From NCBI RefSeq assembly GCF_006345805.1, contig NC_043001.1:39246001-39310000 (forward strand): a DNA stretch of 64,000 nt. Reading direction: 5' to 3'. This document shows, piece after piece, positions 1,029-58,712 of the stretch (the first letter of the stretch is position 1; each line of letters begins with the position of its first letter). Both the position numbers and the translations under genes were made by a program. This DNA comes from Octopus sinensis (lineage: Eukaryota). The notes under the pieces were generated by a model, which saw nothing but the letters and a program-made list of their open reading frames with translations, did no database searches and was not told the DNA's origin.

Positions 1029-1090
1029 TCAAAAGTTAAGTTGATATCTGAAATTAATCATGTTACCATAAAAGCCATCCCAAGGTATGG
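1029..1090 (-). CDS. Probable terminal coding exon: (T)IPWDGFYGNMINFRYQLNF-stop
   Basis: Acceptor cttatttctcaag, phase 1. DGFYGNM resembles the a/b micro-exons. No donor precedes the TGA at 1031-1029, and AATAAA follows on the minus strand near 1003-1008. Confidence 0.7.
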
Positions 1091-1603
1091 CTTGAGAAAT
1101 AAGATATTTTGCATAATTACTTTCAAGCTAGAGCTGTCTAAAAACAACTGATTATAATGTGTCATATTCACCATTGCAAATCTCTTCCATATTTTATGTG
1201 TCTTGCCTGAATAAATATCTAGTGAATTTATTGTAAATTATATATTTACTTGGTTTACTAGTACAGCTAAGGCTTACAAAGCATATTCATGGGTTTGATT
1301 ATTAATGAGGATTAATAAAAGTACAAATTTTGTGTAGAATTTTAATATCTTTAATGTTGTACTTAAGTATATGCATATGCATATTATTTAACTATATATT
1401 TCACACAAAGGAAGAACAAGCCAAAATTTTTTTTATAATTTCACCAGAACTGATTTCAGTGATAGGGCTGGGAAATGAGTCTAAAACAAACAAATAACCC
1501 CACCCGTTTTGTCACAGCCCCTGACAGAAACTAAAATAAAATAAAAGGGTGAACTTGTGCTTTAATTAGTGTAATTGTATTAAAGGATTGTTTATACACT
1601 TAC

Positions 1604-1645
1604 TATCAGGTCTCCTTGAAATGTTACCATAAGCATCATCCATCT
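1604..1645 (-). CDS. Cytoplasmic micro-exon type a (42 bp, phase 1-1): MDDAYGNISRRPD
   Basis: Acceptor tttttatttcttaaag, donor A|GTAAGT. Contains YGNI. Confidence 0.8.
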
Positions 1646-2135
1646 CTTTAAGAAATAAAAATAATGAATGTAATATATAGCTATAAATAATATTTAAAAT
1701 ATATTGTATTGTGTTGAATCTTACAGAATAAAGACTAATGAGATAGACTCAAACACATGCACACACACACACGCTCACACACGCACATACATCTATACAT
1801 ACATACGTGTGTGTGTGTATGTATGTATGTATTTATATATACACAAGAATATGTGTGTCTTTGCGTTCATCTCCAGCCATCACTTGACAGTCATAGTTAG
1901 TTCACATCCACTGAACTTAGTGGTTTGGCACAGGAAATCAACAGAATAAGTACTAAGTTTAAAAATAAGTATTTTCATGGATTTGTTAGACTAAACCCTT
2001 CAAGGTAGTGCCCACAGTCCAATGGGTGAAACAAAACAAATATAAATGTCATATGTGAAGCTGCCTAAACCAAGATATTTGCTAACTCTTGCACTAATGA
2101 ATGTAATTTTATTAATGAATTTCTTATATACTTAC

Positions 2136-2177
2136 TACCAGGTATCTGTGAATCATTAACGTAAGCACCATCCATAT
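2136..2177 (-). CDS. Cytoplasmic micro-exon type b (42 bp, phase 1-1): MDGAYVNDSQIPG
   Basis: Acceptor tttttaatttcttaaag, donor A|GTAAGT. Contains YVND. Confidence 0.8.
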
Positions 2178-2299
2178 CTTTAAGAAATTAAAAAAAAAGA
2201 ATAAATAGCATAGCTATAAATAACATTTAAGTGATGTTAGTACTGTGCCAAATCTGCCATAATGCTAGAGAAATAGACTTAAACATTTTCACACACACT

Positions 2300-2822
2300 C
2301 TGCTTTGGACACTAAACTCTGCTTGCGAAGACTTGTTGAGGCAAGTGAAATCGAAATCAAATTCAATAACTGGCTTCCGTGCTAGTGGAGTGCTAAGAGT
2401 ACCATACGAGTGAGATCATAGCCAGAACAACAAGCTGGCCTCCGTGCCGATGGCATGTTAAAAACACCATTCGAGCGTGATCGTTACCTGCGTCGCCTTA
2501 TTGCACTTGTGCTGGTGGCTCGTGAAAAGACATTCGAGCAAGGTTGTTGGCAGTACTGCTGGACTGGCTCCTGTGCAGGTGGCACATAAAAAGCACCATT
2601 TGAGCATGGCTGTTGCCAGTACCGCCTGATCGACCCTCATGCCAGTGGCACGTAAGAGCATCCACTACACGCTTGGAGTGGTTGGTGTTAAGAAGGGCAT
2701 CCAGCTGTAGAAACTCTGCCAGATCAGATTGGAGTCTGGTGCAGCCATCTGGTTTGCCAGACCTCAGTCAAATCGTCCAACCCATTCTAGCATGGAAAGC
2801 GGACGTTAAACGATGATGACGC
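2300..2822 (+). mobile_element. 3' UTR / non-autonomous piece of the RTE-family LINE (duplicated at ~7020-7520)
   Basis: Ends ...gcatggaaagcggacgttaaacgatgatga, the same 3' end as the long LINE at 26370-29887. Confidence 0.85.
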
Positions 2823-2954
2823 TAATGATAATACATGTATGTATGCATATATCAAGAGCCAAAAGTTTGAGAGTGACATGTTTCATGATTGTTAGCTTTC
2901 TGTTTTTGTTATCCTATGATCATGCTATGTACTTCCAATATTGATTATACTTAC

Positions 2955-3014
2955 CTGGCTGTTTCATGCATAAATATCTGGGATCACTAATTTCTGTGCA
3001 CTGTTCTTCCACAG
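2955..3014 (-). CDS. Cytoplasmic micro-exon type c (60 bp, phase 1-1): VEEQCTEISDPRYLCMKQP
   Basis: Acceptor aattttttgaag, consensus donor CAG|GTAAGT. Contains YLCM. Confidence 0.82.
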
Positions 3015-3564
3015 CTTCAAAAAATTACATAAAAATAGGTATATTTATTGTTTGGAGAGTATGATTTAAATAAACTGATATTGCATAGAAAGTAACTAAA
3101 AATATAGGAAAACATACTGCATATTTCACATATATACATGTATATTTAGACAAAAATAAATATTTGAATTCGAACTCAGCTGAATGTAGGGTATGAGTTC
3201 TTTATCCTCTCATTGATGTACAGGGAAAAAGAAAAGAACTGCCTAATAAATTAACTTTGTATGAACAACAGGCAATAAAAGTAATTTTGGTAAAATTGCA
3301 TTTCAGAATTTGTGTTTGGAGAGACAGTTCTTCAGTAAATTGGCCTTCAAAATTTTATTCCATATTGAAACTGCTAATTTTATTAGAGAAATTATATAAA
3401 AGTACTAATGGCGTGGTTCACAGTTTAAAATTGGCTCTTAAGTGATTTGATCTCAGAATATTTTGGTTTTATATTAATTAATGCCAAGTAATTCCACAGA
3501 ATACAGTCTAACTAAATAGATTCACACACACACATGCACACAGACACACACACACATAACAATA

Positions 3565-5900
3565 CATACATCATCATCATCATCGTTTAATGCCCGTTTT
3601 CCATGATGGCTTGAGTTCTTCAGTTTGATTGAGGACTGGCAAGCCAGGAGCCACACCAGGTTCCAATCTGATCTGGCAGTGTTTCTACAGCTGGATGCCC
3701 TTCCTAATGCCAACCACTCCTAGAGTGTAGCGGATGCTTTTTACATGCCACTAGCATGGGAGCCAGTTAGGCGCAGCTGGCTTTGGCCACATTCAGATGG
3801 TACTTTTTATGTGCTATGGCTTTTTATGTGCTACTAGTCGGGACGGGGAGGCTGGCATCAAACATGTTTGGATGGTGCTTTTTACATGCCACCAGCTTGG
3901 AAAGCCAGTCAGGCAGTACTGGCAATGACCCACGCATGCATGGTACATATTGCATGCCACCAGTATGGGAGCCAGTCAGGTAGCACTGGCATCTGCCACA
4001 ACTACAATTCGATTTGATTATATTTTGATTTTACTTGACTCAATAGGTCTCCTCAAGCGCAGAATGTTGCTTGACAATTCAAAGGTACTTTTTAAATGGG
4101 CTGGTTATGCAACACTGGTGTAGGCTACAGCTGTGATCTCACTTTACTTACTGGGTCTTCTCAGTAATAGCATACCTCCAGAGGTCTCAGTCTATTGTCA
4201 TTGCCTCTGTGAGGCCCAACGTTCGAAGGTCATGCTTCACCCTAATCACATTTTATGTCTTACTGAGTCTCCTTCTTCCATGGGTTCCTTCCACTGTTAG
4301 GGAGTGACACTTCTTCACACAGTTCTCCTCATCTGTATGCAGCACATGACCATACCAGCACAGTCATCTCTCTTGCACTCTATGTCCAATGCTTATGTCC
4401 ATTTCTCTCAGGGCACTTACACTCTGTACTGTGTGCACATTGACATTACACATCAAGTGGATCCAACTAGCTTTATTTCTTTCAAGCCTATGCATGTCTT
4501 CAGCAGTCATGGCCCATGTTTCACTGTTATTTAGCATGGCAGTTCACACGCATGCATCATACAATCTACCTTTCACTCTGAGTGAGAAATCCTTTGTCAC
4601 CAGTAGAGGTAGGAGCTTTCTGAACTTTGCCCAGGCTATTCTTATTCTAGTGGCAATGCTCTCTGAACATCTACCCCCACTGCAGACTAAGTAATGGAAG
4701 CTATCAACTATTGAGTTGATGCATAATTATTGCGGCTTTTTTCAAGAAATTTTATTCAACAAAAACAATAATAACATGTAACAAAAACATCTTTAAATGA
4801 TTATTCCAGAGCATATTCACTATCTACTTCAATTACTGCTTCCCATTTGCTTGGCAGACTGTCAGACTGTCATTTAAAGATGTTTTTGTTAAATATTATT
4901 ATTTTTGTTGAATAAAATTTGTCGAAAAAATGCCGCAATAATTATGCACCGACCCATTATTTCTAGTTTTTCCCCCTGTCATGTGATGGAATCAGTCTTA
5001 TGAGCATCTGCAGGGTTTATTGCCCCTGTGCACACAAAAGCTATCTTCCTGGTTAACATACCTTTGATGTGCTGCACCACTTATGCATCCATAGCTTACA
5101 CTGTGTACATCTTATAGAGTTTCTACCTACACCTTTTATACACACCGGGCAGGGCCACCTACCTGAAGGGGTATGTGATGTGTTCGCCTTCATATGTAAT
5201 AGGACTTTGGTCTTTGTGACATTGACTCTAAGGCCCTTCAATTCTAAACCTTGCTTCCACATCTGAAATTTCTTCTCTAGTTCTGGTAGTGATCCTGCTA
5301 TGAAAGCAAGGTCATCAGCATAGAGGATCTCCCACTGTTATTGCCTGGAGGACTATGATGAATAAGAAGGGGGATGAGGACTGATCCTTGGTGAACCCCT
5401 ACTTCTACCTGGAATTCTTTACTATACTCATTGCCGACTCTTATCTTACTAACAACATCCCTGTACAAGACCTGTATAGCTCTTATTAACCACTCGTCTA
5501 TCCCCAGTTTCTGCATTGCTCACCAGATAAAGGCTTGAGGGAATCCGTCAAAGGCTTTCTGCAAGTCAACAAAAGCCAAGTATAGGGTTTATCTTTGGTT
5601 AGGTATTACTCCTATTGTTGCTGTACCAGGTATATAGCATCAGTGGTGCTTCTACCTGACACAAAACAGAATTGCATCTCATCTAAGCAGACTCTCTTCC
5701 TAATTAGTTAGGCTATGATCCTCTCTGTGACCTTCATAACCTGATCCAGCAGTTTGATATCCCTGTAGTTATTTCTATCTAAAGCATCACCTTTACATTT
5801 GTAGCAGCTGACTATGGTGCTGCTATGCCATTAATTAGGTATGACGTCTTTGTGAATTACCTGGTTTACAATACGGGTGACTAGGCCATGACCCACACCA
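3565..5900 (-). mobile_element. Degraded RTE LINE (RT plus 3' UTR) interrupted by a MITE; duplicated at ~8270-10605
   Basis: Minus-strand KLGIDEWLIRAIQVLYRD...GVHQGSVL and GRWPCPVCIKGVGRNSIRCTQC; (CAT)n tail at the left end. Confidence 0.9.
4711..4957. mobile_element. Tc1/mariner-type MITE, 247 bp, TA target-site duplication
   Basis: Imperfect ~80 bp TIRs (gatgcataattattgcggc... / ...gccgcaataattatgcacc), flanked by TA on both sides, splitting LINE sequence ctatcaacTA|tttctag. Confidence 0.9.
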
Positions 5901-6298
5901 CCAGATATTTTAAACATATATTTTAAGATATAATGTGCATTATATCTTTGCTTGGTTTACTGGTACAGCTAAGGCTTACAAAGACGATGTATTGGCTGGA
6001 TTATTAATGAAGATGAATAAAGATGTAAATTATGTGTATAATTCTAAATATTTTCAATTTTGCATTTAAGTACATGCATACGAATCTTCTTAAGCCATAC
6101 AGAAAGTAAGAACAAACCAAAATTTTTGTTAACTTCCCCAGAACTGATTTCAGTGATAGGGCTGGGAAATGAGTCTAAAACAAACAAATAACCCCACCCC
6201 GTTTTGTCACAGCCCCTGACAGAAACTAAAATAAAATAAAAGGGTGAACTTGTGCTTTAATTAGTGTAATTGTATTAAAGGATTGTTTATACACTTAC

Positions 6299-6340
6299 TA
6301 TCAGGTCTCCTTGAAATGTTACCATAAGCATCATCCATCT
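6299..6340 (-). CDS. Cytoplasmic micro-exon type a (42 bp, phase 1-1): MDDAYGNISRRPD
   Basis: Acceptor tttttatttcttaaag, donor A|GTAAGT. Contains YGNI. Confidence 0.78.
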
Positions 6341-6830
6341 CTTTAAGAAATAAAAATAATGAATGTAATATATAGCTATAAATAATATTTAAAATATATT
6401 GTATTGTGTTGAATCTTACAGAATAAAGACTAATGAGATAGACTCAAACACATGCACACACACACACGCTCACACACGCACATACATCTATACATACATA
6501 CATACGTGTGTGTGTGTATGTATGTATTTATATATACACAAGAATATGTGTGTCTTTGCGTTCATCTCCAGCCATCACTTGACAGTCATAGTTAGTTCAC
6601 ATCCACTGAACTTAGTGGTTTGGCACAGGAAATCAACAGAATAAGTACTAAGTTTAAAAATAAGTATTTTCATGGATTTGTTAGACTAAACCCTTCAAGG
6701 TAGTGCCCACAGTCCAATGGGTGAAACAAAACAAATATAAATGTCATATGTGAAGCTGCCTAAACCAAGATATTTGCTAACTCTTGCACTAATGAATGTA
6801 ATTTTATTAATGAATTTCTTATATACTTAC

Positions 6831-6872
6831 TACCAGGTATCTGTGAATCATTAACGTAAGCACCATCCATAT
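6831..6872 (-). CDS. Cytoplasmic micro-exon type b (42 bp, phase 1-1): MDGAYVNDSQIPG
   Basis: Acceptor tttttaatttcttaaag, donor A|GTAAGT. Contains YVND. Confidence 0.78.
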
Positions 6873-7654
6873 CTTTAAGAAATTAAAAAAAAAGAATAAA
6901 TAGCATAGCTATAAATAACATTTAAGTGACGTTAGTACTGTGCCAAATCTGCCATAATAAATGCTAGAGAAATTGACTTAAACAATTTCACACACACTCT
7001 GCTTTGGACACTAAACTCTGCTTGCGAAGACTTGTTGAGGCAAGTGAAATGAAAATCAAAATCGATGACTGGCTTCCGTGCTAGTGGAGTGCTAAGAGTA
7101 CCATACGAGTGAGATCGTAGCCAGAACAACAAGCTGGCCTCCGTGCCGATGGCATGTTAAAAACACCATTCGAGCGTGATCGTTACCTGCATCACCTTAC
7201 TAGCACTTGTGCTGGTGGCTTGTGAAAAGACATTCGAGCAAGGTTGTTGGCAGTACTGCTGGACTGGCTCCTGTGCAGGTGGCACATAAAAAGCACCATT
7301 TGAGCATGGCTGTTGCCAGTACCGCCTGATCGACCCTCATGCCAGTGGCACGTAAAAGCATCCACTACACGCTCGGAGTGGTTGGTGTTAAGAAGGGCAT
7401 CCAGCTGTAGAAACTCTGCCAGATCAGATTGGAGTCTGGTGCAGCCATCTGGTTTGCCAGCCCTCAGTCAAATCGTCCAACCCATTCTAGCATGGAAAGC
7501 GGACATTAAACGATGATGATGCTAATGATAATACATGTATGTATGCATATATCAAGAGCCAAAAGTTTGAGAGTGACATGTTTCATGATTGTTAGCTTTC
7601 TATTTTTGTTATCCTATGATCATGCTATGTACTTCCAATATTGTTTATACTTAC

Positions 7655-7714
7655 GTGGCTGTTTCATGCATAAATATCTGGGATCACTAATTTCTGTGCA
7701 CTGTTCTTCCACAG
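7655..7714 (-). CDS. Cytoplasmic micro-exon type c (60 bp, phase 1-1): VEEQCTEISDPRYLCMKQP
   Basis: Acceptor aattttttgaag, donor CAC|GTAAGT. Contains YLCM (YxxM). Confidence 0.75.
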
Positions 7715-9414
7715 CTTCAAAAAATTACATAAAAATAGGTATATTTATTGTTTGGAGAGTATGATTTAAATAAACTGATATTGCATAGAAAGTAACTAAA
7801 AATATAGGAAAACATACTGCATATTTCACATATATATACATGTATATTTAGACAAAAATAAATATTTGAATTCGAACTTAGCTGAATGTAGGGTATGAGT
7901 TCTTTATCCTCTCATTGATGTACAGGGAAAAAGAAAAGAACTGCCTAATAAATTAACTTTGTATGAACAACAGGCAATAAAAGTAATTTTGGTAAAATTG
8001 CATTTCAGAATTTGTGTTTGGAGAGACAGTTCTTCAGTAAATTGGCCTTCAAAATTTTATTCCATATTGAAACTGCTAATTTTATTAGAGAAATTATATA
8101 AAAGTACTAATGGCGTGGTTCACAGTTTAAAATTGGCTCTTAAGTGATTTGATCTCAGAATATTTTAGTTCTATATTAATTAATGCCAAGTAATTCCACA
8201 GAATACAGTCTAACTAAACAGATTCACACACACACATGCACACAGACACACACACACATAACAATACATACATCATCATCATCATTGTTTAATGCCCGCT
8301 TTCCATGATGGCTTGAGTTCTTCAGTTTGATTGAGGACTGGCAAGCCAGGAGCCACACCAGGTTCCAATCTGATCTGGCAGTGTTTCTACAGCTGGATGC
8401 TCTTCCTAATGCCAACCACTCCTAGAGTGTAGCGGATGCTTTTTACATGCCACTAGCATGGGAGCCAGTTAGGCGCAGCTGGCTTTGGCCACATTTGGTT
8501 GGTACTTTTTATGTGCTATGGCTTTTTATGTGCTACTAGTCGGGATGGGGAGGCTGGCATCAAACATGTTTGGTTGGTGCTTTTTACATGCCACCAACAT
8601 GGAAAGCCAGTCAGGCAGTACTGGCAATGACCCACGCATGCATGGTACTTAGTGCATGCCACCAGTATGGGAGCCAGTCAGGTAGCACTGGCATCTGCCA
8701 CAACTACAATTCGATTTGATTATATTTTGATTTTACTTGACTCAACAGGTCTCCTCAAGAGCAGAATGTTACTTGACAATTCAAGGTACTTTTTAAATGG
8801 GCTGGTCATGCAACACTGGTGTAGGCTACAGCTGTGATCTCACTTTACTTACTGGGTCTTCTCAGTTATAGCATACCTCCAGAGGTCTCAGTCTATTGTC
8901 ATTGCCTCTGTGAGGCCCAACGTTCAAAGGTCATGCTTCACCCTAACCACATTTTATGTCTTACTGAGTCTCCTTCTTCCATGGGTTCCTTCCACTGTTA
9001 GGGAGTGACACTTCTTCACACAGTTCTCCTCATCTGTATGCAGCACATGACCATACCAGCACAGTCATCTCTCTTGCACTCTACGTCCAATGCTTATGTC
9101 CAACATTTCTCTCAGGGCACTTACACTCCGTACTGTGTGCACATTGACATTACACATCAAGTGGATCCAACTAGCTTTATTTCTTTCAAGCCTATGCATG
9201 TCTTCAGCAGTCATGGCCCATGTTTCACTGTTATTTAGCTTGGCAGTTCACACACATGCATCATACAATCTACCTTTCACTCTGAGTGAGAAATCCTTTG
9301 TCACCAGTAGAGGTAGGAGCTTTCTGAACTTTGCCCAGGCTATTCTTATTCTAGTGGCAATGCTCTCTGAACATCTACCCCCAATGCAGACTAAGTAGCG
9401 GAAGCTATCAACTA

Positions 9415-9661
9415 TTGGGTTGATGCATAATTATTGCGGCTTTTTTCAAGAAATTTTATTCAACAAAAACAATAACAACATGTAACAAAAACATCTTTAA
9501 ATGATTATTCCGGAGCATATTCACTATCTACTTCAATTACTGCTTCCCATTTGCTTGACAGACTGTCAGACTGTCATTTAAAGATGTTTTTGTTAAATAT
9601 TATTATTTTTGTTGAATAAAATTTGTCGAAAAAATGCCGCAATAATTATGCACCGACCCAT
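9415..9661. mobile_element. Duplicate copy of the 247 bp mariner-type MITE
   Basis: Same TIRs and TA TSD at the equivalent position of the second 4.7 kb unit. Confidence 0.9.
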
Positions 9662-11010
9662 TATTTCTAGTTTCTCCCCCTGTCATGTGATGGAATCAGT
9701 CTTATGAGCATCTGCAGGGTTTATTGCCCCTGTGCACACAAAAGCTATCTTCCTGGTTAACATACCTTTGATGTGCTGCACCACTTTTGCATCCATAGCT
9801 TACACTGGGTACATCTTATAGAGTTTCTACCTACACCTTTTATACACACCGGGCAGGGCCACCTACCAGAAGGGGTGTGTGATGTGTTCGCCTTCATATG
9901 TACTAGGACTTTGGTCTTTGTGACATTGACTCTAAGGCCCTTCAACTCTAAACCTTGCTTCCACATCTGAAATTTCTTCTCTAGTTCTGGTAGTGATCCT
10001 GCTATGAAAGCAAGGTCATCAGCATAGAGGATCTCCCACTGTTATTGCCTGGAGGACTATGATGAATAAGAAGGGGGATGAGGACTGATCCTTGGTGAAC
10101 CCCTACTTCTACCTGGAATTCTTTACTATACTCATTGCCGACTCTTATCTTACTAACAACATCCCTGTACAAGACCTGTATAGCTCTTATTAACCACTCG
10201 TCTATCCCCAGTTTCTGCATTGCTCACCAGATAAAGGCTTGAGGGAATCTGTCAAAGGCTTTCTGCAAGTCAACAAAAGCCAAGTATAGGGGTTTATCTT
10301 TGGTTAGGTATTACTCCTATTGTTGCTGTACCAGGAATATAGCATCAGTGGTGCTTCTACCTGACACAAAACCGAATTGCATCTCATCTAAGCAGACTCT
10401 CTTCCTAATTAGTTGGGCTATGATCCTCTCTGTGACCTTCATCACCTGATCCAGCAGTTTGATATCCCTGTAGTTATTTCTATCTAAAGCATCACCTTTA
10501 CATTTGTAGCAGCTGACTATGGTGCTGCTATGCCATTAATTAGGTATGACTTCTTTGTGAATTACCTGGTTTACAATACGGGTGACTAGGCCATGACCCA
10601 CACCACCAGATATTTTAAGCATATATTTTAAGATATAATGTGAATTATATCTTTGCTTGGTTTACTGGTACAGCTAAGGCTTACAAGGAAGATGTATGGG
10701 CTGGATTATTAATGAAGATGAATAAAGATGTAAATTACATGTATAATTCTAAATATTTTCAATGTTGCATTTAAGTACATGCATACGAATCTTCTGAAGC
10801 CATATATTTTACAGAAAGTAAGAACAAACCAAAATTTTTGCTAACTTCACCAGAACTGATTTCAGGGATAGGGCTGGGAAATGAGTCTAAAACAAACAAA
10901 TAACCCCACCCCGTTTTGTCACAGCCCCTGACAGAAACTAAAATAAAATAAAAGGGTGAACTTGTGCTTTAATTAGTGTAATTGTATTAAAGGATTGTTT
11001 ATACACTTAC

Positions 11011-11052
11011 TATCAGGTTTCCTTGAAATGTTACCATAAGCATCATCCATGT
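11011..11052 (-). CDS. Cytoplasmic micro-exon type a (42 bp, phase 1-1): MDDAYGNISRKPD
   Basis: Acceptor tttttatttcttaaag, donor A|GTAAGT. Frame open, contains YGNI. Confidence 0.8.
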
Positions 11053-11679
11053 CTTTAAGAAATAAAAATAATGAATATAATACATAGCTATAAATAACAG
11101 TTAAAATATATAGTATTGTGCTGATACTATCAGAATAAAGACTAATGAGATAGAATGAAACACATGCACACACAGCGACACACAGACACATGCACACACA
11201 TAAGTATAAACATGTGTTTCAGGTGTAAGTTTTAATTTCTAATTCTTAGATAAGAAACTTTCTTATTCCCTCATGAGGAAAGTTAAAGAACAAGATATTT
11301 ACTGCTCAATCAATGTTACTTAAACAAAATTCCACAAATCATGTCATGATTCACTATTTTTCCCATTTCGATTTCTTCTCAAATGACAAATTCCCAGTAA
11401 CTTCTATTAAAATGATTTTTGACACCATCATTCTTAACAATTAACTGACTAATCAATGTTCTAAACTAAAGCAAGAGAGAGTCATGTACAAGTGCTTAAT
11501 GACACATTTGGAATTACTGATCATTAAGCATTAGAGGCATTCAAGTGCCCTCCATGGAATGTTATTAAATATGAAGATTCTTCCTAACATGGACCCCACA
11601 TAGGAAACAGTTGTTCTAGTAAACAGAAGTATCATGGGTAAATCATTTAAGGTTATGAAAATAAAGAAAGTCTTCATAA

Positions 11680-47464: not shown

Positions 47465-47543
<79 letters not shown>

Positions 47544-47700
47544 GATAGGTTTCTTTCAGTTTCTGTCTACCAAATCCACTCACAAGGCTTTGGTTGGCCT
47601 GAGGCTGTAGTAGAAGACACTTACCTAAGGTGCCACACAGTGAGACTGAACTCAGAACCATGTGGTTGGAAAGCAAGCTTCTTACCACACAGCCACTCCT
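46745..47700 (-). mobile_element. SINE fragments, RTE 3' UTR fragment (46998-47310) and (TA)n
   Basis: catcatcatcgtttaacgtccgttttccgcgctagc; SINE bodies as seen elsewhere in the window. Confidence 0.75.
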
Positions 47701-48795
47701 GTGTCTATAATATGATCACTCATTGTGTTTAATTTCAAGATGGTAGCCCATGATGAAGTCAGGTCAGCTATGACTGTATGAATGCATGTATGTCATTATT
47801 CTGTTTTATTTCAAGATTTCTTGCCAATAGAGAAAGAGCTGCTTTCTAGCCTAAATCCAAAGCTCCTTCACTAGAATTTCAACAATATCAACAGGGTATT
47901 TTTGTATGCATGCATGTATGCATATGTGCAAATTTGTATAACTTGTTTTATGTATATATTCTCATGCATACAGTTGCATGTCTCAAAATACTCATCTATA
48001 CTTAAATGATAAACTTCTAGGAAGTTTCTAGGAAGTTTGGATCTGTAGTCTTCGAATGAACTTTCTCCTTTCTGGTTTTGAGAAGCCTTATTTCTCAAGA
48101 TTTGAATTTAGACAGTGTGTTACATATCCCATGTATGTATGTACGTACGTACCAATACATACATACATGCATACATATGTATATACATATGTATATATAT
48201 ATATATATAGGAGATAAATAAAAATATATGCATACATACAAACATATATGTACGTACCTACATCTACATGTATATATACATGCATATATAAATAATTATA
48301 CGGGAGTACAGGACATCACAAAAAGACGTAGAAACGGAAAAAGCCAAAAAACAAAAAACAAGAAAACGGGAAAACGAAGAACAAGAAAACGAAAAACAAA
48401 TACAGGACGAGCTACACAAGGACCAAACCCCGTCCATCAGCTGTCGCTAGAGGAGTCGGGCATGTTTCGAAGGCATAACAGAACACTAATCCAATAGGCC
48501 TTCCTGCGAGAGAATTAAAATAAAATTTCAAGCAGCGGGGCAAAATGAGTACGAACACAAACAAGACGTAACAATAAGACTGCAAAATTAAAATACATGT
48601 ACAAAACCAAACACAAGAGGACGAACGAAAAAGCCTTTTTTCTGGCATAGACAAACGATAAAACTGCAAAAATAAAAATACATGTACAAAAAGTACAATT
48701 AGTTACAAAATGAGAAAATAACAAGAATACTATACAGGAAATCAACCACACAAGGGGACGAACGAAGAAGCCTTTTGCTGGCAAGGACGAAAGTG

Positions 48796-48829
<34 letters not shown>

Positions 48830-48839
<10 letters not shown>

Positions 48840-49620
48840 AGGATGTGTGTCTGTCTGTCTGTCTGTGTGTTTCCCTAAAACTTGAGAACTACACAACCAA
48901 TTTCATTCAAATTTTACACATGCCTTACTTAGGGTCCATGTAGTTTCATGGGCAAAAAAATGTTCAACTTCATGCCTAGAGCGAGCCTGTAGCAATATCT
49001 TCTCTACTATTTCAGTATTACGTGTTAAAAGTGAAACAAAAACATTTCTCTACTTTATGTCAGATACTTTCACTTTAACAATAAAAATAATAATAACAAT
49101 TGAATTATATGTAGTAAGCAATAATTAAAATCAAACTAAAGTATAATATAATCGTAACATAACAAAAGTAAAAATAGCAATTGGTATAAAATTGCATCAA
49201 TGACTTGAACTTGAATAAGTGGTTTCACATGAATGGAAATAAATTAAAAATAAAATTAGCGTGCAGAAATGGAATAGTCCAGATGTTATTATTATTACTG
49301 TTTAACTATTGTTATCACGTTTGTTGGTTCCTCATAAAGGAAATATTGTTGTGTTGCATTTGTTAAATAATTGTAAACTGTAATCCTCCCCCTTTGGGAG
49401 AAGGAGCTTTGGTTATTGTTTAAAATTTGAATTGTGTCCCTGTTTGGGGAAATTGACAATATTTTCACCGTTTACACGGAAGCATTTTTGTTAGAATGCC
49501 TTCGATAGAAGAAAGTCCAAAAATGAATTTCGCTGCAGCTGTCGGTGGACGCGAACTCATTGAAATTAAAATGGAAGAAATACGGATTGATCACTGACAA
49601 AGACGGTAAATCTAGGATCA
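48830..49620 (+). mobile_element. Helitron-associated non-autonomous element, 5' part
   Basis: Starts tatatataaaatgaggatgtgtgtctgtctgtc...caaccaatttcattcaaattttacacatg, resembling DINE/Helitron-type heads. 3' end not identified. Confidence 0.45.
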
Positions 49621-50886
49621 CACCACCAAACGAAATAAAAAATTAAATTAAAGAAAAGACTATTGTCTATAAAGTATACAATGTAGAGAAAAAAAAAAGA
49701 TTTGAACACCTGGAGGAAAGCACCATCGAAAAGCGTCTGGGGCGACTATGAAAGATATCTAACTAGAGGCGGTAAGTTCGCCACAATAGAAGCAAGGTTC
49801 GAGTTAACGGAGCGTGCAAGGGAGCACTCGACTTGAACCTTGCAAAGTGGAAATATTTTATTTTTACCTTTATATCTGGGACGTAGGACGTCCCGGATAA
49901 AAATTTAAAATGTCCCCCAAGAAGTAGAGGTAGGCTGGATTGTAGCCACACTTCTATACAAGAGGGAGTACAAGATACAATTGATCGAAATTGCAAGATA
50001 CGGGCCTACAATTCCAGTCTGTTATATATTTTGAGTATTGTTATCACTAGTGATATCAAGATATAACTTTGTATTTTGTATTTTATGTGTAGATGTATAT
50101 ATATAGATAGATGTACATGTAATATGTACACATATATATATACATATATATACATGCACTAGGACTATGACCATGCTAGCATGGAAAGCAGACGCTAAAC
50201 AATGATGATGATGATGATGATTTTTGTATTCATATTCGTGTAACACCATCTGTTTTTCCGTCCTTGTTTTGTATACATTCAAAGCTTTTTTCCAAGGAAT
50301 CTAATGCGATTAGCTTAGTTTTTCCTAGGGGCTGGCCAGATTGGAGCAATCTAAAGATTAATCAGCCAAAATTGCGAGAATGATCCGGCTCTTGACTGAA
50401 GATTGAAGGCTTCGAATGTCTCGTCCGTGTTTTTTGTATCACCTTCTAAATGTTTTGCGTTCTTGTCCCAGTTTGTATTTTTTTATATATATATGTATGC
50501 ATATACATATATATATACAAATGTATGTATGCATATACATATATATATACATATGTATGTATGCATATACATATATATATACACATATGTATGTATGTAT
50601 GCATATACGTATGTATGCATATATGTATGTATTGGTCGAGTCATTTTCTTGTTACTCTAGAAATTCATCCATGTGCACTAAATGGCAAAACCCCTGAGTA
50701 GCAAGGGACTGACTTGATCCAAATGAAATATATTAAATCCCTACTATTGTACTTCCAACACTCAACACTAACAGCATGATTCACACACACACAGATTTCA
50801 ATGTCTATTTAACCACGTCAGGTAGAGGAGTTTTAAGACTATATATCTCATATAATTAACAAACCTTTATAATGTGTAAACATCCA

Positions 50887-50992
50887 ACCTCTTATTTTTG
50901 TGGCATTTTATAAGCAAGAAGCCCCACAATTTTAATAATAATATACAGTTCCTACACTGCAACCAATAATCATTCCACAAGAGTTCCATATT
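50887..50992 (-). pseudogene. Frameshifted duplicate of the transmembrane exon (probably an assembly artefact)
   Basis: Same sequence as 52045-52149 but with several 1-2 bp indels that break the frame. Lies in the first copy of the 49951-52270 tandem duplication. Boundaries approximate. Confidence 0.7.
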
Positions 50993-52044
50993 TCTGAAAA
51001 GATATATTAAAAGACTTTGCATTATTACATTAATAAGATAAAGGTTATGAAAATTTTTCAAATTATTGTCTTGTATTGTAAGGTCATAGACACTGGGATA
51101 CACAGTTCAACTTCTATACCAAGAGGGAGTACAAGATACAATTGATCGAAATTGCAAGATACGGGCCTACAATTCCAGTCTGTTATATCTTTTGAGTATT
51201 GATCACTAGTGATATCAAGAGAAAACTTTGTATTTTGTATTTTATGTGTAGATGTATATATATAGATAGATGTACATGTAATATGTACACAATATATAAC
51301 ATAGATATACTGCATAGGACATGACCATGCTAGCATGGAAAGCAGACGCTAAACAATGATGATGATGATGATGATTTTTGTATTCATATTCGTGTAAACA
51401 CCATCTGTTTTTCCGTCCTTGTTTTGTATACATTCAAAGCTTTTTTTCCAAGGAATCTAATGCGATTAGCTTAGTTTTTCCTAGGGGCTGGCCAGATTGA
51501 GCAATCTAAATTAATCAGCCAAAATTGCGAGAATGATCCGGCTCTTGACTGAAGATTGAAGGCTTCGAATGTCTCGTTCGTGTTTTTTGTATCACCTTCT
51601 AAATGTTTGCGTTCTTTGTCCCAGTTTGTATTTTTTTATTTATCATGTATGCATATACATATATATATACAAATGTATGTATGCATATACATATATATAC
51701 ATTGTATGTATGCATATACATATATATATACACATATGTATGTATGTATGCATATACGTATGTATGCATATATGTATGTATTGGTCGAGTCATTTTCTTG
51801 TTACTCTAGAAATTCATCCATGTGCACTAAATGGCAAAACCCCTGAGTAGCAAGGGACTGACTTGATCCAAATGAAATATATTAAATCCCTACTATTGTA
51901 CTTCCAACACTCAACACTAACAGCATAGATTCACACACACACACAAATTTCAATGTCTATTTAACCACAGTCAGGTAGAGGAGTTTTAAGACTATATATC
52001 TCAATATAATTAACAAACCTTTATAATGTGTAAAACATACCAAC

Positions 52045-52149
52045 CTCTTATTTTGTGGCATTTATAAGCAAGAAGCCCCACAATTATTAATAATAATACA
52101 GTTCCTACACTGCAACCAATAATCATTCCCAAAGAGAGTTCCATAATTT
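52045..52149 (-). CDS. Transmembrane exon (phase 1-1, 105 bp)
   Basis: Acceptor tatatcttttcag and donor AGAG|GTTGGT. Encodes (E)IMELSLGMIIGCSVGTVLLLIIVGLLAYKCHKIR, a hydrophobic helix followed by a basic stop-transfer segment. Joins in frame to the 56242 exon. Confidence 0.85.
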
Positions 52150-52299
52150 CTGAAAAGATATATTAAAAAGACTTTGCATTATTACATTAATAAGATAAAA
52201 GGTTATGAAGAATTTTTCAAAAATTATTGTCTTGTATTGTAAGGTCAATAGACACTGGGATACACAGTTGCTGCTGAAAACTTCAAAAACAATAAAAAT

Positions 52300-54640
52300 G
52301 CACATACAGTTGTACACCCTTTTTATATCAGCACAGATATTGTTTTAAAGAAACAATAGAATTACTGCCTAACATATTCGGTGATAAAACTTCTCTATTT
52401 AACACCCGAATGGGGTATTGCAATATAATGAAAAAAGAGAATGATGATTTTATCACATACACAGGAACAGTCAACAGGATGTGTGAAAGTTTTAAACTCA
52501 AAGTACTTACACCTGAGATGTTCAAGTATCTTATTTTCGTACAAGGTCTAACAGCAAGCAAAGATACAGAAATTCAAGCAAAAATTCTTTCTTTATTAGA
52601 ACAAATGAATATAGATCTGACTTTACAGTCTATGGCAGAAGAATGCCAAAGAATGGTAAACCTGAAACATGATGTAGAAAAAATTCTAGAAAAGGATTCC
52701 TCAAAAATACAAATATGCCAACCAGAAAAGTATAACTAGAAAAGAGCACCACATCCTAATCCATGTTATGGATGTGGGGGTATACATTTAAGAAAAGACT
52801 GTCCATTTAAAAATCAAAAATGTTACAGTTGCAAAAGAAATGGTTGCATGAGTTCACATGGGAGAACAAAATTTCAAAGGTCCTAATGTGCTCTCAGCAG
52901 AAACAAAAATTGACTCCCAAACAAGAAAATTTGTACACATAAAAATATATGGAATACATACTAAACTTCAATTGAATACTGGAAATGATATTTCAATAGT
53001 AAATATGGACACACGGAAGAAAATAGGGAAACCTATGTTGAGAAAAACAGCAAAATCTGCTCATAGCATACCAGGTGACAAGTTACATTTCATAGGCAAA
53101 ATGTGGACTGATGTTACATTTCAAGGGAAAACATGCAAGGTGAAAGTCTTCATCATTAAAAATGTAACCGATCTGTTTGGTACTGATTGGTTAGAATTTG
53201 ATTTATGGGACCTCCCCATAAATCTCTATTGTAAAAACAAAAATGATTGTCCCTCTAAAAATAATCTGTCTGAAGAGTTAAAGAAAAAATTTTTTTAAAT
53301 GTTTCCACAAGTACTCTTGGACAAACTAGGTCTATGCCCAAAAACTGAGAGCCCACGGTCCAGGATACATATTGACCACACAGGACCAGTGAATGGTGCA
53401 TACTATCAAATTGTTGTGGATAGCTATACAAAGTGGCCAGAGGTATGCAGATGTAAGAAACTCACAGCAAGTACAACCATAAAGTTCCTACTTGAGTTAT
53501 TTGCTTGATGCAGTGTTCCAGATATGTTAGTTTCAGATAATGGAACACAATTCATGGAATATAAATTGAGAAATTTCTGCAAAATACATGCCACAAAGCA
53601 CATTTTTACCCCACCTTACCACCTGAGGTCAAATGGGCAGGCAGAAAGATTTGTCAACAGGTTCAAAAGAGCTCTAAGAAAAATTAGAAACAAGCTAGAT
53701 AATAACAAGGCACAAACGAAATTTTTGAGAGTATACAGAATAAAGCCAAATCCAAATGCTAATTCAGTTAAGTTAATGTTCGTGCATAAAATAAAATCAA
53801 TTTTTGATAAATTATTGCCAGGAAAAATACATATAAAGGAAAGACAAAAAATACATTTGAAGGAAATACAAGAAATATTACATTTCGAAGTAGAAGATAA
53901 AGTTAATTTTAAAAATTACAAAAATGGTAAAGAAGGTTTGGAGGATGGCTGTGTAATCAAAAGATTAGGTAACATGGTATATTTAATTAAAGGACAATGT
54001 TTGGAACACAAGAGACAGCTTAACCAGTTAAAGATAAAAATACAAAAAAAAACCAAGGGTAATGCCAATGGAAGTCTTCTATGATATGTTTGAAGAGCCA
54101 GCACTGAGAGATATTGAACCCCATAGAACTAGCTTCAGAAAACAAAAACAGCCTGAATATCTAGAAGTAATCCCTAAACGAAAAAGATATTAAATTTTCA
54201 AAAAAAAAAAGTGGGGGAAAGAATGAGATTGCTTAATACAATGAAAAGTAAACATGTTGTGCGCAACAAACAATGCTATCTTAAAAGTTGGACAACAGTT
54301 AAGATACAAAAGCAATAAAAAAAAAGAGGGAGGGGTGCTGGAAAAAAAAAATGGAGAAAGAAATTCCACTTTCTCACAGTAGTCGAAATCTCAGAATGGG
54401 AGATGTGATGAGAGTTATGGTGCCCCGTTTTTGAGAGATCGGCTGGTCCGAGTAAAATATAAAAATAGTGATGATCTGAGTTTAAGGTCTGGAGTTTGGA
54501 GTCAAGTGAAGTTTGTGTTAGTTCACAGTGAAGTCAGATGGTGTTGGTTGGTTAGTTCACAAGAAATATTGATTGTTTTTTCATAAAGAGATTTGTTAGT
54601 TCATTACATTGTTTTTACTGTTATCTGGTTATCTTATTTA
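52300..54640 (+). mobile_element. Ty3/gypsy LTR retrotransposon with RT/RNase H deleted (gag zinc knuckle, protease, integrase, PPT, probable 3' LTR)
   Basis: CYGCGGIHLRKDCPFKNQKCYSCKR, LQLNTGNDISIV, RIHIDHTGP..VVDSYTKWPE, LVSDNGTQF..PPYHLRSNGQAERFV; purine tracts at 54200-54221 and 54315-54338. Confidence 0.9.
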
Positions 54641-54641
54641 T

Positions 54642-55145
54642 TCATCATCATCATCATTGTTTAACGTCCGTTTTCCATGCTAGCATGGTTTGGACGGTTC
54701 AACTGGGGTCTGGGAAGCCAGAAGGCTGCGCCAGACCCAGTCTGACCTGGCAGTGTTTCTACAGCTGGATGCCCTTCCTAACGCCTACCACTCCGTGAGT
54801 GTAGTGGGTGCTTTTTATGTGCTACCGGCACATGTGCCAGACGAGGCTGACAAACAGCCATGATCGGATGGTGCTTTTTACATGCCACTGGCACTGGCAT
54901 CACAGCTACAATTTCCATTGATGTTGAACGATTTCGATTTTGATTTTCACTTGCCTCAACAGGTCTTCACAAGTAGGGTTTGTGTCACAAGAAGGAAAGG
55001 TATGCATAAGTGGGCTGGCTACATCCCAGGTAGAGGCCACGGGTTATGGTCTCACTTGTCCTGCCGGGTCTTCCCATGCACAGCATACTTCCAAAGGTCT
55101 CGGTCTCTGGTCATTTCCTCGGTGAGACCTACAGTTTGAAGGTCG
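54642..55145 (-). mobile_element. RTE LINE extreme 3' fragment
   Basis: catcatcatcattgtttaacgtccgttttccatgctagc, plus the RT C-terminus (LTEEMTRDRDLWKYAV on the minus strand). Confidence 0.88.
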
Positions 55146-56241
55146 TGGTAACAAATTACATTACATCTGGCAATGAGTAACTATGTTACAACAGCCTGCT
55201 CTCTAGCACTCTCCGTATTGATAGAATTATCATCTATGGTACAGGTTATTTTTATATTCACACAATTAATTGTATGCTTCCAATAATTTTAGTTATATTA
55301 ATTTTCATTTCATTGAGATACATCATTTCCTTGAAATTTTCAAGCACATTTAGCTAAACATTTTCTGTAATCATTAATTTAATTTAATTTTGTTATAATC
55401 TTTATATCAATATAGGGAATCATTTTTTAAAAATATTTATTTGATCCTACTGAATGAATATTATCACTATCAATTTGATTTCATTGCAATCGAGGATATT
55501 GTTAAAGATCTTACAAAATAAAATTATTTTATGGATTAAGAATCAATCCAAATCATAAACATTTGCCTTGCCCCTAAAACTCTCATAGTAATTGTAATTC
55601 TAACAACCATCTAACCTTTAGCTCTTACTTCCTTGAGTATTAAAAAATAAAACCAAACTGTAATCATAATCTTTCAGTTCCCAACCCTAAGATTATCTAA
55701 TAAATAAAGCAAAATTTTATCATTTTATTGGAAAATAAAATGAAATATATAGAAATAAAAGTATTGGAGGTGTATATGATCTTTTTTATTTAGTCATAAA
55801 ATTGAACAATAGCTCTCACTTTCTTGGATATTGGATTTGAGAAAGGGAGTGGAGAGGTTCATTGTTCAAGCTACAGATGGCCTTCACATGATTTTCAAAC
55901 TCCACTCTAATTATAAACATAACATTTAAATAAATAAACTAAAGAAAAATAGTTAATTGACCCGAAAACTAGAGTTCAGGGAACGGTTCTCAAGTGAAAG
56001 TTTTGCTATCAGAAATTTTCTAGAATATTTCTGAAAAGAAAATTATGTTCACCTACAAAAGTAAAAAATACTTAAACAAGAAAGTTAAAATTGATCTGCC
56101 ATCTTTATAACATATAGCTAATTTTAAAACATGAGCTAAAAACAGAAGCTCAAGTACTTCACAATATATTAATCAATTTTATATAACATGAAACAATATT
56201 TTAAGAGATTAAAGAATAATTACAAACATGTAACAACTTAC

Positions 56242-56550
56242 CTTTAGATCTCAAGTCAAAAATAATTATTTCTTTTCCTATGGAGTTTTCCACTATTAAT
56301 TGATATGTACAAAAATCATTAGCTTTGATGTCTTCTATCTTTAAACTAGTACAGCTTCCTTTGAAAGGAAACTCATTTGATAAATAATCAGTTGTTAAAT
56401 ATTTGTTTGAGTCAATTAATTTGTCATTTATTTGCCATTTTACATCAGATTTTGGATGTGAATAAAAACACTGTTTGAAAATTACAGATTCTCCAATTGC
56501 AACATTTCTCATTTTAGGATCGTTTGATATTGAACTGAAAATAGGTTTCA
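56242..56550 (-). CDS. Membrane-proximal Ig-like (I-set-like) domain exon (phase 1-1, 309 bp)
   Basis: ORF 56201..56551. Acceptor ttttttcttcaaccag and donor AAAG|GTAAGT. Translation KPIF...VIFKQCFYSHPKSDVKWQIND...SLKIEDIKANDFCTYQLIVENSIG...DLRSK follows Ig strand spacing. Confidence 0.9.
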
Positions 56551-58460
56551 CTGGTTGAAGAAAAAATAAAATATTGAAAGAGAAAATAATATATAATGTA
56601 CATTTGAAACAGAAAATTTCTAAGTTTACGAAAAATAGAAGAAATAATAAAACATAAACTATACAATTTTATGGCAGAAATTTACTTTCAGACTAATTCA
56701 GTTAGTATTTAAAGCTAAAAATTTGACAATTCTAAGCATCTGTACCATTTCACCTCCATATTAGAATCCCTTTAACTCTTACTTACGATCCTTTTCAAAT
56801 ACAAACTCTACACAGCGACCATTGCAAATTCTACAGTGTTTGGTCCCAGACAATCCTCTAACATTGTTGTCTCATCACATTCCACCTGATCAAATCACCC
56901 AACTACTTGCATTTCTCTAAATTTTATGTTAACAATCTGTTGTACTAAGTATGTAAAATAACCTGCCAAATGCCAAACACAATTTTGATTGTTGTGTAAG
57001 ACCCTCTCAATTTTACACAACACTAAACCATGTACATTATCTACCAGTGAATGCTTTACAACAGTCCGTTCTACTACAATACAAACATACAAAACTTCAA
57101 TTTCAAGATTAACAATAGAGTAAAATACACCTTCATATAAGTTTTATCACTCTTAATTCCAATTACACAAATTCTTGCTTATTAGACACCCGGCAACTTT
57201 GTCAAAGAATCTTATTCACCACTTTTTAACTAATCTAGTAATGTAGACATGCATATGGCAGTAAAATCTGTCATATGAGCTACCTACATCATATCCAGTT
57301 TAACTTCATATACATAACAAACACTCAATTACTTTGTTCAGTTCTACTCATTATTTAAGATGTGATCTTTATGGTTTTTAATTAGAAAAAGGCCTTTGAT
57401 CACTTAAAACTAGTAAGTCAAGTTAATAGTTTCAAGTGTTATCTTAAATTGTTTTTTTTACTGATTATTTTCATATATTTGATCAAAGACAAAAGGCCAA
57501 TGTGTGACACAAAAGAAATATTTACAAAGGAGTTGGATTTATATAACCTGTATTAGACCTCACTTCAGAAATTTGGGGATTTATGATAATTTAGGAAGCA
57601 ATTTTCATTACCTGATATTATCCTAGATATCACTTTGAAATTATTCTTGCAAATCTACTAATTCCTTGCAAGTTTTGAAATTTCCCTTTTCAAAGGTCAC
57701 TTAATCCAAAATGTATGTTATCTCCAATAAAGACAAACTCCTCAATACTGCTCAGAAACAGTATTTCTAAAATTATACATATAATCTTGATTCATCAGTG
57801 CTTACATTACCTTAAATCTCAAGGCATCTAAAGTGGTACACATCCTAGAAACAATTCCTTCTATGTTACAAAATGGCTTTCATAAAGATATAAACACAAT
57901 ACAAACATTTCTCTTCTGAAGCTAGTAAATATGACATGGTATAGAATTTAAATAGAAACTCTATACTCCTAAAAGTTTGTCTATTGTAATAAATTTATTA
58001 GCCAAAATTGTATATCTTTATGATTTGAATTACTCTAGCAAACAATATTTGATGTTCTTGCCTGATAAGTTAATTTGCTATATATTCTTTATACAGGCAT
58101 ACAGTAGACAGTTAAAATGGAACAAACTAAAAAACAAAAACTGAACATGGAAACAATTTCACTATATAAAATGAATGCTTAAAATTTACTTGAAAATAGC
58201 TTCAGATCTTTTGGAGAAAATTTGAGGATACTGAATTTGAAAATTATAATTAAGAAAATATTGAATTTTAAGAGGATATTGAATTTGAAAATTAGAATTA
58301 AAAATTATCAGTTTTATTGATATACATAAAAAGAGACAAAGTCCAACAATCTTCTAATGAGATAAAATCAAATAAATAACTAAACAATTTATCATTCTAA
58401 AAATAATTCAAATTGTAAATATGTTTTTATAAATAAATTGTGGCTTTGTAAAATACTTGC

Positions 58461-58712
58461 CTGGAATTTTGTAGTTTGATGATTTACTCACATGAAAATA
58501 TTCATTGCTTACATGACACTCCCATGTACCAGTATTATTGAAAGTAGAATTGTTTATAGATAATACATTTATATTATAAGTATTCTTAGTGGTGTTTCCC
58601 CATTTTTGCTCCAGTTTGTATTCATAATTTGGTGGAATTCCATCAAATGCAGTGCAATTAATTATTATATTATTTGTCTCATTTGAAATATGAATGTTTA
58701 CTTGAGGAGGAT
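58461..58712 (-). CDS. Ig-like domain exon (phase 1-1, 252 bp) of a type I IgSF receptor
   Basis: Acceptor ttttttaag. Open frame xPPQVNIHISNETNNIIINCTAFDGIPPNYEYKLEQKWGNTTKNTYNINVLSINNSTFNNTGTWECHVSNEYFHVSKSSNYKIP has the Ig Cys...Trp...(TG-W-x-C) pattern and several N-x-S/T sequons. It ends at CAG|GCAAGT (GC donor), in phase with the next exon. Not in the ORF track. Confidence 0.85.

Follow-up and report, generated by a model that had tools for sequence, protein, structure and literature searches.

The DNA analysed here is a stretch of 64,000 nucleotides from Octopus sinensis (RefSeq contig NC_043001.1, positions 39,246,001 to 39,310,000, on chromosome CM016863.1), referred to below as the window. 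Its minus strand carries part of a gene for a putative receptor of the immunoglobulin superfamily (IgSF), whose tail is assembled from very short exons that encode one tyrosine-containing module each. The exons are listed below in the order of transcription; all are on the minus strand.

58461-58712, minus strand: immunoglobulin (Ig) exon Ig1, 252 nt, phase 1-1; T-rich tract and AG acceptor, non-canonical donor CAG/GCAAGT; Pfam Ig_3
56242-56550, minus strand: Ig exon Ig2, 309 nt, phase 1-1, I-set type; donor G/GTAAGT; 70-75% identity to family members
52045-52149, minus strand: transmembrane (TM) exon, 105 nt, phase 1-1; EIMELSLGMIIGCSVGTVLLLIIVGLLAYKCHKIR; weak donor G/GTTGGT
11011-11052, minus strand: micro-exon A1, 42 nt, MDDAYGNISRKPD; YxN module; coding sequence of XP_036359227.1
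7655-7714, minus strand: micro-exon B1, 60 nt, VEEQCTEISDPRYLCMKQP; YxxM module; coding sequence of XP_036359227.1
6831-6872, minus strand: micro-exon C1, 42 nt, MDGAYVNDSQIPG; YxN module, paralog of type A; coding sequence of XP_036359227.1
6299-6340, minus strand: micro-exon A2, 42 nt, MDDAYGNISRRPD; coding sequence of XP_036359227.1
2955-3014, minus strand: micro-exon B2, 60 nt, same peptide as B1; coding sequence of XP_036359227.1
2136-2177, minus strand: micro-exon C2, 42 nt, same peptide as C1; coding sequence of XP_036359227.1
1604-1645, minus strand: micro-exon A3, 42 nt; coding sequence of XP_036359227.1; spliced in annotated models to exons left of the window

An Ig-Ig-TM chain with a modular tail

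Ig1, Ig2, the TM exon and the seven symmetric micro-exons of 42 or 60 nt form one open frame, in which the micro-exons follow the order A-B-C-A-B-C-A. Every exon of the chain is phase 1-1 and is preceded by a pyrimidine tract and an AG acceptor, and the donor GTAAGT follows seven of the seven micro-exons. A preliminary description of this DNA had proposed a chain of eleven exons. All of its segments are present, and ten of them are corroborated by their frame, their splice signals and orthologs; the eleventh, at 1029-1090, is not. The six peptides quoted in that description all occur in the minus-strand translation where it had placed them, and the codons at the junctions yield exactly the linker residues that it had claimed.

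Could such a series of small exons be a chance pattern? A strict scan for an AG, a pyrimidine tract, an open phase-1 frame and GTAAGT gave six matches on the minus strand, five of which are the A/C exons; the plus strand had no match. Because the scan returns mostly A/C exons and nothing on the opposite strand, and because a paralogous locus repeats the sizes and phases, the micro-exon pattern lies far beyond chance.

Pfam places the window exons in I-set (3.5e-11) and Ig_3 (3.3e-10), both matches passing the curated cut-offs, which are the two kinds of domain that a profile check of the stitched protein had been expected to find. The core Cys, Trp and Cys residues are present in both Ig exons, and the predicted protein is a member of the immunoglobulin superfamily. 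The TM exon encodes a hydrophobic stretch of 25 residues followed by KCHKIR, with no charged residue in the membrane segment that would suggest an adaptor partner. With these Pfam matches, the TM exon and the modular tail, the architecture Ig-Ig-TM-tail and the description as a non-catalytic IgSF receptor are both supported.

The gene extends past both edges of the window. Between 58.7 and 64 kb no additional Ig exon was found upstream of Ig1, and the orthologs have a signal peptide (seen in models P0181 and P0139) and about six further Ig domains; the 5' exons had rightly been placed outside the window. Neither extra modules nor the 'VEGTDETISYKQN' exon of Octopus bimaculoides were found in the 41 kb intron between the TM exon and A1. 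Type-I IgSF receptor genes are taken to form a tandem array restricted to octopods, with the 3' two-thirds of one of these genes in the window.

Where does the tail end? The preliminary description had placed the end inside the window, in a short segment beyond A3.

1029-1090, minus strand: claimed terminal exon, IPWDGFYGNMINFRYQLNF and stop; decayed A/C-type module, donor destroyed

When this segment is aligned to a C/A-type module, the donor GTAAGT has become AAATAG, and there are extra bases and an in-frame TGA. The segment has no match to the hidden Markov model (HMM) of the modules and is in none of the proteins fetched. It contains the only combined YxNM site of the window (YGNM). The O. 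sinensis and Octopus vulgaris models splice A3 onward to exons left of the window, running past its left edge through four more modules to DYQ and a stop, and the claimed end of the tail is not borne out. The segment 1029-1090 is better read as an inactivated module within the intron that separates A3 from the exon after it. Because AATAAA occurs about 25 nt past its stop, use as an alternative last exon stays conceivable; the segment is at most an unproven exon of that kind. Beyond it, positions 633-1000 repeat the intron that precedes B (compared with 3128-3493, 83%), and this homology stops at about 633. A B-type exon distal to 1029 was sought and not found, the sequence from about 633 to the window edge being unrelated.

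Orthologs, paralogs and existing gene models

With the window's Ig1-Ig2-TM as query, the match to O. vulgaris CAI9722595 is 98.9% (over Ig1 and Ig2) and that to O. bimaculoides LOC106874055 is 85%. The O. bimaculoides gene (XP_052824264.1/XP_014777113.1) has a TM exon 94% identical to that of the window, joined directly to A/B/C-type modules, and in O. vulgaris CAI9722595/6 the exons Ig1 and Ig2 are joined to tail modules. By these matches the window gene falls in one orthogroup with LOC106874055 and CAI9722595 and is their predicted ortholog. Since the former joins the TM exon to modules and the latter joins Ig1 and Ig2 to modules, the chain of the first ten exons is supported, at the level of gene models, by two orthologs.

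A search with the stitched protein returned octopus proteins only, the best match being O. sinensis LOC115212119, which has the same arrangement of Ig-Ig-TM and modular tail. Its locus (L001, on CM016863.1) has a GC donor after Ig1, GTTGGT after the TM exon and tail exons of 42 or 60 nt in phase 1. An exhaustive HMMER search with the LOC115212119 protein as query gave 12 matches at E<=1e-30; all those with a named source are from Octopus or Argonauta, and below them come generic giant IgSF proteins. A sequence search of the PDB with a full-length paralog found no relatives at E<=0.001. The family is an octopod-restricted, uncharacterised and fast-evolving IgSF family. Literature searches found no mention of these loci and no account of such tails in cephalopods. 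The gene models are already in databases as 'uncharacterized protein', and the putative micro-exon docking tail and its duplication dynamics appear undescribed.

Some details of the family models concern their 5' parts. The GC-AG intron after Ig1 (window 58461) is kept at the paralogous locus (10906), and the O. bimaculoides model P0008 reads through it (KIPGKYFTKPQF). The Ig1 exon is omitted from the O. vulgaris model P0011 and may be an alternative cassette in its own right. XP_036359229.1 starts with the 20 residues MQLDTGSNITIINQKSWKYV (L001 10001-10060). They contain D-T-G-S, a motif that resembles a retroviral-type aspartic protease site, and a weakly similar frame lies on the plus strand of the window at 52966-53043 (tblastn, E=0.45). 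If this first exon is repeat-derived, XP_036359229.1 would be a 5'-truncated model with a borrowed first exon.

The exhaustive search also retrieved XP_036359227.1 (uncharacterized protein LOC115212116, O. sinensis), in which residues 1040-1149 correspond exactly to A1-B1-C1-A2-B2-C2-A3. The exons had been described as hidden. The seven micro-exons are already coding sequence of this protein, and the term can apply at most to Ig1, Ig2 and the TM exon. After A3 the protein continues N-MDGAYINYSQKPG-T-VEDQYAEMSHPRYLCMKKL-AVEVQYGEVSEHIYIEMKKR-DMDVDYVNVPKNPG-DYQ and stop, and none of these later exons is in the window. Its Ig1, Ig2, TM exon and long first portion of the tail come from another locus.

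How was this protein put together? In segment-wise blastp its N-terminus matches best O. bimaculoides LOC106869178 and O. vulgaris CAI9722591, in which the same N-terminus goes with a C-terminus of the LOC115212119 type. The middle matches best O. bimaculoides LOC106879981 (91%), and the last 181 residues match best O. vulgaris CAI9722595 and O. bimaculoides LOC106874055. The O. bimaculoides counterparts of these pieces belong to distinct genes, which share a chromosome and end separately. The gene range of XP_036359227.1 is 780 kb, with LOC115212119 nested within it on the same strand; that of the O. vulgaris ortholog is 184 kb. Because its segments match three O. bimaculoides genes and its range includes a nested gene, XP_036359227.1 most probably consists of three or more array members fused by read-through. 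On paper it ties the micro-exons to a different upstream TM exon, a linkage that the preliminary description had named as telling against its own model; the protein that does so looks like a fusion of paralogs.

A different account of the same protein is that the micro-exons are a 'constant' tail to which several upstream Ig-TM units are spliced, as in the clustered protocadherins or UGT1A, with the window's Ig1, Ig2 and TM exon being one of several alternative 'variable' units. XP_036359227.1 does connect the TM exon and early tail of another paralog to A1, across the Ig and TM exons of the window; the tandemly arrayed paralogs share one strand, and with phase 1-1 everywhere any such junction would be in frame. 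However, the members of the O. bimaculoides array are separate genes, each having a tail and a stop to itself (the tail of LOC106879981, for instance, finishes with ...ATMFYTSTH and stop), and orthologs pair window-type TM and Ig exons specifically with window-type modules. Moreover, the N-terminus of XP_036359227.1 is also borrowed, from a third gene, which points to chaining by the gene model, and the model spans 780 kb with a family member nested inside. A shared tail is considered very unlikely. The reading of the window as one receptor gene with its own tail would correct a fused 780 kb gene model in the O. sinensis reference. In two of the three species with annotation the octopod array appears to be mis-stitched, owing to exons that are tiny, symmetric and repeated.

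Duplication, conservation and decay of the modules

The micro-exons of the window lie within a tandem duplication, and further duplicated or repeat-derived features occur upstream.

1237-11201, no strand assigned: tandem duplication of the A-B-C cassette, 4.7 kb unit, 2.1 units, 96.7% identity
50889-50993, minus strand: inactivated second copy of the TM exon, 105 nt; phase-1 frame interrupted by stops
26445-26675, minus strand: open frame of repeat origin, DSDYRDYLIKPINHKKYTH...FQCAN, within the 41 kb intron from the TM exon to A1

The two copies of the cassette (1237-6487 and 5939-11201, 96.7%) differ by 143 substitutions and 12 indel events, a pattern that rules out an assembly artefact as the source of the repeat. 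The 4.7 kb duplication is real and recent. At the paralogous locus three identical B exons (38875, 42000 and 47047) are the product of an independent tandem multiplication. That locus also contains, interspersed with the modules in use, copies that are not used (40500-40637, 45545-45682, 51137-51267 and 61496-61618): two of B type are open and have lost the donor (GGAAAA), one is frameshifted, and one of A type has the weakened donor GTTAAC. These copies point to birth and death of tail modules within the family.

Which positions of the modules are retained? For the A/C type, 33 distinct copies were collected from 16 proteins of four octopod species, and for the B type 27 copies. The A/C consensus is M-D-[DG]-[AV]-Y-V-N-[VI]-S-[KR]-K-P, with the core D-x-x-Y-x-N-x-S-x-K-P; the conserved positions are D2 (33/33), Y5 (29/33), N7 (30/33), S9 (27/33), K11 (24/33) and P12 (32/33). 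In B modules the conserved positions are E7, S9, Y13 (19/27) and M16 (15/27, with L in a further 6), giving the core Y-L-C/E-M. The YxN and YxxM motifs fall on conserved module positions in the logos of both sets. The window has Cys at the place of the ancestral first Tyr of B (Y5, 16/27). The codons of the conserved D, Y and N show synonymous differences.

Between the window and the paralogous locus, the proximal 50 nt of the intron flanks are 0.64-0.78 identical, the exons 0.64-0.71, and flanks more than 100 nt away 0.33-0.53. Judged by these identities, the unit that persists is the exon with its splice flanks of about 50 nt, as would be expected for regulated cassette exons. For the Ig exons the ratio of nonsynonymous to synonymous substitution rates (dN/dS) is about 0.7 at a dS of about 0.18; the proportions of nonsynonymous and synonymous differences (pN and pS) are 0.26 and 0.22 in A/C modules and 0.27 and 0.46 in B modules. 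With an Ig dN/dS of this size, pN close to pS in the A/C modules and repeated duplication and decay of modules, the term 'fast-evolving' is apt.

The number of modules varies between gene models, and the isoform differences that follow come from annotation models of O. bimaculoides paralogs and of the ortholog, not from reads. The seven RefSeq isoforms of O. bimaculoides LOC106869178 (X1-X7) differ only by whole modules of 14 or 20 residues, and for the window's ortholog there are two models with a difference of 68 residues, equal to 20+14+14+20. Cassette splicing of modules is likely on this pattern. Up to the distal modules, the order is A-C-A-B-C-A-C-A in the O. vulgaris ortholog model and A-B-C-A-B-C-A in the window, which implies another number of units, skipped B exons, or both.

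Duplication has also affected the TM exon. The region was duplicated in tandem (49950-51107 and 51110-52269, 1.16 kb unit, 95.8%), and small indels are unusually frequent (24 gap events, 40 substitutions). The dead copy is still 105 nt long and retains its acceptor and the donor GTTGGA. It may represent a poison exon or pseudo-exon, or else assembly sequence that was poorly polished. The open frame at 26445-26675 is 98.7% identical to residues of CAI9722595, where it replaces the TM exon. The N-terminus of another family model (P0143) includes a similar sequence, and the frame is probably a piece of a transposon that leads gene prediction astray. The replacement of the TM exon in the O. vulgaris model is probably an annotation error.

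Is the gene itself decaying? The Ig1-Ig2-TM part could be an unexpressed remnant in O. sinensis, or the whole gene a pseudogene, with exons that are intact only through the youth of the array. Consistent with this, one copy of the duplicated TM region is dead, a dead module lies directly after A3, the O. vulgaris ortholog model lacks a TM exon and overall dN/dS is high; in addition, protein searches, which were not exhaustive, returned no O. sinensis protein with these three exons. However, the non-exhaustive search with the stitched protein also missed the near-identical O. vulgaris protein. The open frame and the splice signals are kept in all ten exons and the Cys and Trp of the Ig cores are intact, whereas the truly dead copies, in the window and at the paralogous locus, show lost donors, frameshifts and stops. 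Ig1 and Ig2 are furthermore 98.9% identical to annotated O. vulgaris coding sequence. Decay of the locus is judged very improbable.

The remainder of the window contains other repeats. Positions 12001-16000 have a GC content of 0.44, higher than the rest of the window, and a strongly negative GC skew (-0.43). No tandem array explaining this composition was found there, only short TA and AC microsatellites, and the block is possibly a repeat element. Long imperfect microsatellites of (TA/CA) type at 21500-22800 and 47400-51800 read as YIYIYMYV-like open frames in the intron. Among ten intronic open reading frames searched against Pfam, the sole match is a weak reverse-transcriptase fragment at 46306-46749 (RVT_1, E=4.7e-5, under the cut-off).

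Putative docking motifs of the tail and comparison with known systems

Over the full claimed tail, the motif counts of the preliminary description are confirmed: six YxN, three YxxM and no immunoreceptor tyrosine-based inhibitory motif (ITIM). The corroborated exons contain five YxN and two YxxM (YLCM in B1 and B2), with acidic residues before each. A motif scan of the window tail found neither an ITIM ([SIVL]xYxx[IVL]) nor an activating motif (ITAM, YxxL/I-x6-8-YxxL/I). The two Tyr of B modules are only 8 residues apart. In the AlphaFold model of an ortholog, which is of low confidence (mean predicted local distance difference test (pLDDT) 41.7), a helix is predicted at the TM segment and the tail is unstructured (pLDDT about 23-28).

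The Src homology 2 (SH2) domains of Grb2, Drk and SEM-5 bind phosphotyrosine (pY) in the context pYxN, and that of p85, the regulatory subunit of phosphoinositide 3-kinase (PI3K), binds pYxxM. These preferences of Grb2 and p85 are said to go back to work by Songyang and colleagues in 1993 and 1994; YVNV is the textbook optimum for Grb2. Docking of Grb2 and PI3K on the octopus tail is plausible. The tail would then be a disordered, multivalent phosphotyrosine scaffold. Clustering driven by a ligand would lead Src-type kinases to phosphorylate the tyrosines in acidic context, after which pYxN sites would recruit SH2 adaptors of the Grb2/Drk type and pYxxM sites the PI3K regulatory subunit. The number of docking sites would be set by the number of modules. 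Since none of the module exons shifts the frame, their duplication, their decay or cassette splicing could alter the number and mix of docking sites and leave the ectodomain untouched. Other multivalent pY tails that work through adaptors with SH2 and SH3 domains are those of LAT (PMC9629719) and SYG-1 (bioRxiv 10.64898/2026.08.25.747070).

An alternative explanation accepts the gene model and assigns the modules another role, either as YxxPhi sorting or endocytosis signals or as binding sites for another partner that reads the whole D-x-x-Y-x-N-x-S-x-K-P core. YGNI, YLCM and YVNV all match YxxPhi, and conservation reaches S at +4 and K-P at +6/+7, which is beyond the needs of an SH2 site alone. 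Against sorting, one signal is normally enough, whereas here there are at least seven modules in variable number. The N at +2 is retained in 30 of the 33 modules, YVNV is the Grb2 optimum named above, and acidic residues precede the Tyr as at sites of the Src/Syk type. Such a role is rather unlikely, and an Ig-receptor gene whose tail is a multivalent pY scaffold tuned by frame-neutral micro-exons is the best explanation and a reasonably probable one.

Several observations weigh against this explanation. Just one O. sinensis model uses these micro-exons, and it connects them to another TM exon; the O. vulgaris ortholog model omits the TM exon in favour of the repeat-derived exon at 26445-26675. 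YGNI and YLCM are also compatible with a YxxPhi sorting signal, and some modules of the family have S for N at +2 or have lost the Tyr. Overall selection appears weak, in both the Ig exons (dN/dS about 0.7) and the A/C modules (pN 0.26, pS 0.22), and part of the conservation could be due merely to young age. A protein search with the tail alone gave no match even at E<=10. The labels 'activating' and 'immune', which the preliminary description had used, are inference only.

Other tails in the family differ in their motifs. O. vulgaris P0145 and Argonauta hians P0017 have the tail repeats D-x-x-L-Y-A-K-V-N-K-P and I-Y-A-x-V-N, and end in T-I-Y-A-D-[LI], which fits a pattern like that of the ITIM or the immunoreceptor tyrosine-based switch motif (ITSM) under a permissive regular expression. 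This hints that the family may include tails of inhibitory type beside those of docking type.

A wider proposal can be made for the array as a whole. Signalling valency in an octopod-specific IgSF array may be set by genome and splicing together, with one SH2-docking Tyr per frame-neutral micro-exon (YVNV type for Grb2/Drk, YxxM for PI3K). Unequal crossing-over would shift the number of modules between sister species, and cassette splicing would shift it between cells, so that one ectodomain could give anything from weak signalling to LAT-like adaptor condensates. This proposal is tentative and, taken in full, doubtful. If the tail itself functions as proposed, the family would offer cephalopod biology a candidate family of activating-type surface receptors, testable with peptides and chimeric receptors.

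Which known systems come closest? The closest architectural analog is PECAM-1, and the closest functional analogs are LAT/NTAL and tails of the CD28/DAP10/CD19 type; none of these is homologous to the octopus gene. Nephrin/SYG-2 and Kirre/SYG-1 are IgSF adhesion proteins with multi-tyrosine tails that are phosphorylated by Src and read by SH2 adaptors (bioRxiv 10.64898/2026.08.25.747070). One member of the octopus family has been automatically named 'syg-2-like'. Assignment to the nephrin/SYG-2 family is not supported: the full-length paralog P0011 matches only Ig families, with no FnIII found, and the PDB search gave no relatives at E<=0.001. No YDxV was seen by eye in the listed tails, a pattern that was not scanned for. 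CD28, ICOS, DAP10 and CD19 resemble the window gene in being non-catalytic receptors or receptor partners with YxN and YxxM motifs, which they use for Grb2 and PI3K p85; they differ in having one to few sites and no micro-exon modularity.

Coding regions made of many symmetric micro-exons are found in the micro-exon genes (MEGs) of Schistosoma, where skipping or duplication of exons keeps the frame and yields protein variants. The MEG products are secreted parasite proteins and not receptor tails, and their sequence is unrelated to that of the octopus gene. In PECAM-1 (CD31) the tail is encoded by very short, alternatively spliced exons, such as the 19-residue exon 14 with one functional Tyr (PMC2132561). 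Like the predicted octopus protein, PECAM-1 is a multi-Ig type-I receptor with single tyrosines in short tail exons, which in PECAM-1 are signalling tyrosines. It differs in that its tyrosines are in ITIMs that recruit SHP-2, not in YxN or YxxM, and in that its exons do not consist of a few module types duplicated in tandem; the two have no detectable homology (the PDB sequence search was empty).

LAT and NTAL have disordered tails with several pYxN sites of the YVNV type for Grb2 and Gads, and adaptor networks and condensation are governed by how many sites there are (PMC9629719, PMC8094118). They are palmitoylated, vertebrate-specific adaptors without a ligand-binding ectodomain, whereas the putative octopus scaffold is part of one protein with an Ig ectodomain, and exon duplication and splicing would determine how many sites it has. 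The number and order of docking sites that a receptor requires are currently studied in engineered tails of LAT, nephrin and SYG-1. If the octopus tail works as proposed, it would be a clear example from nature of a receptor whose pY docking sites are tuned in number through the duplication of micro-exons and through cassette splicing.

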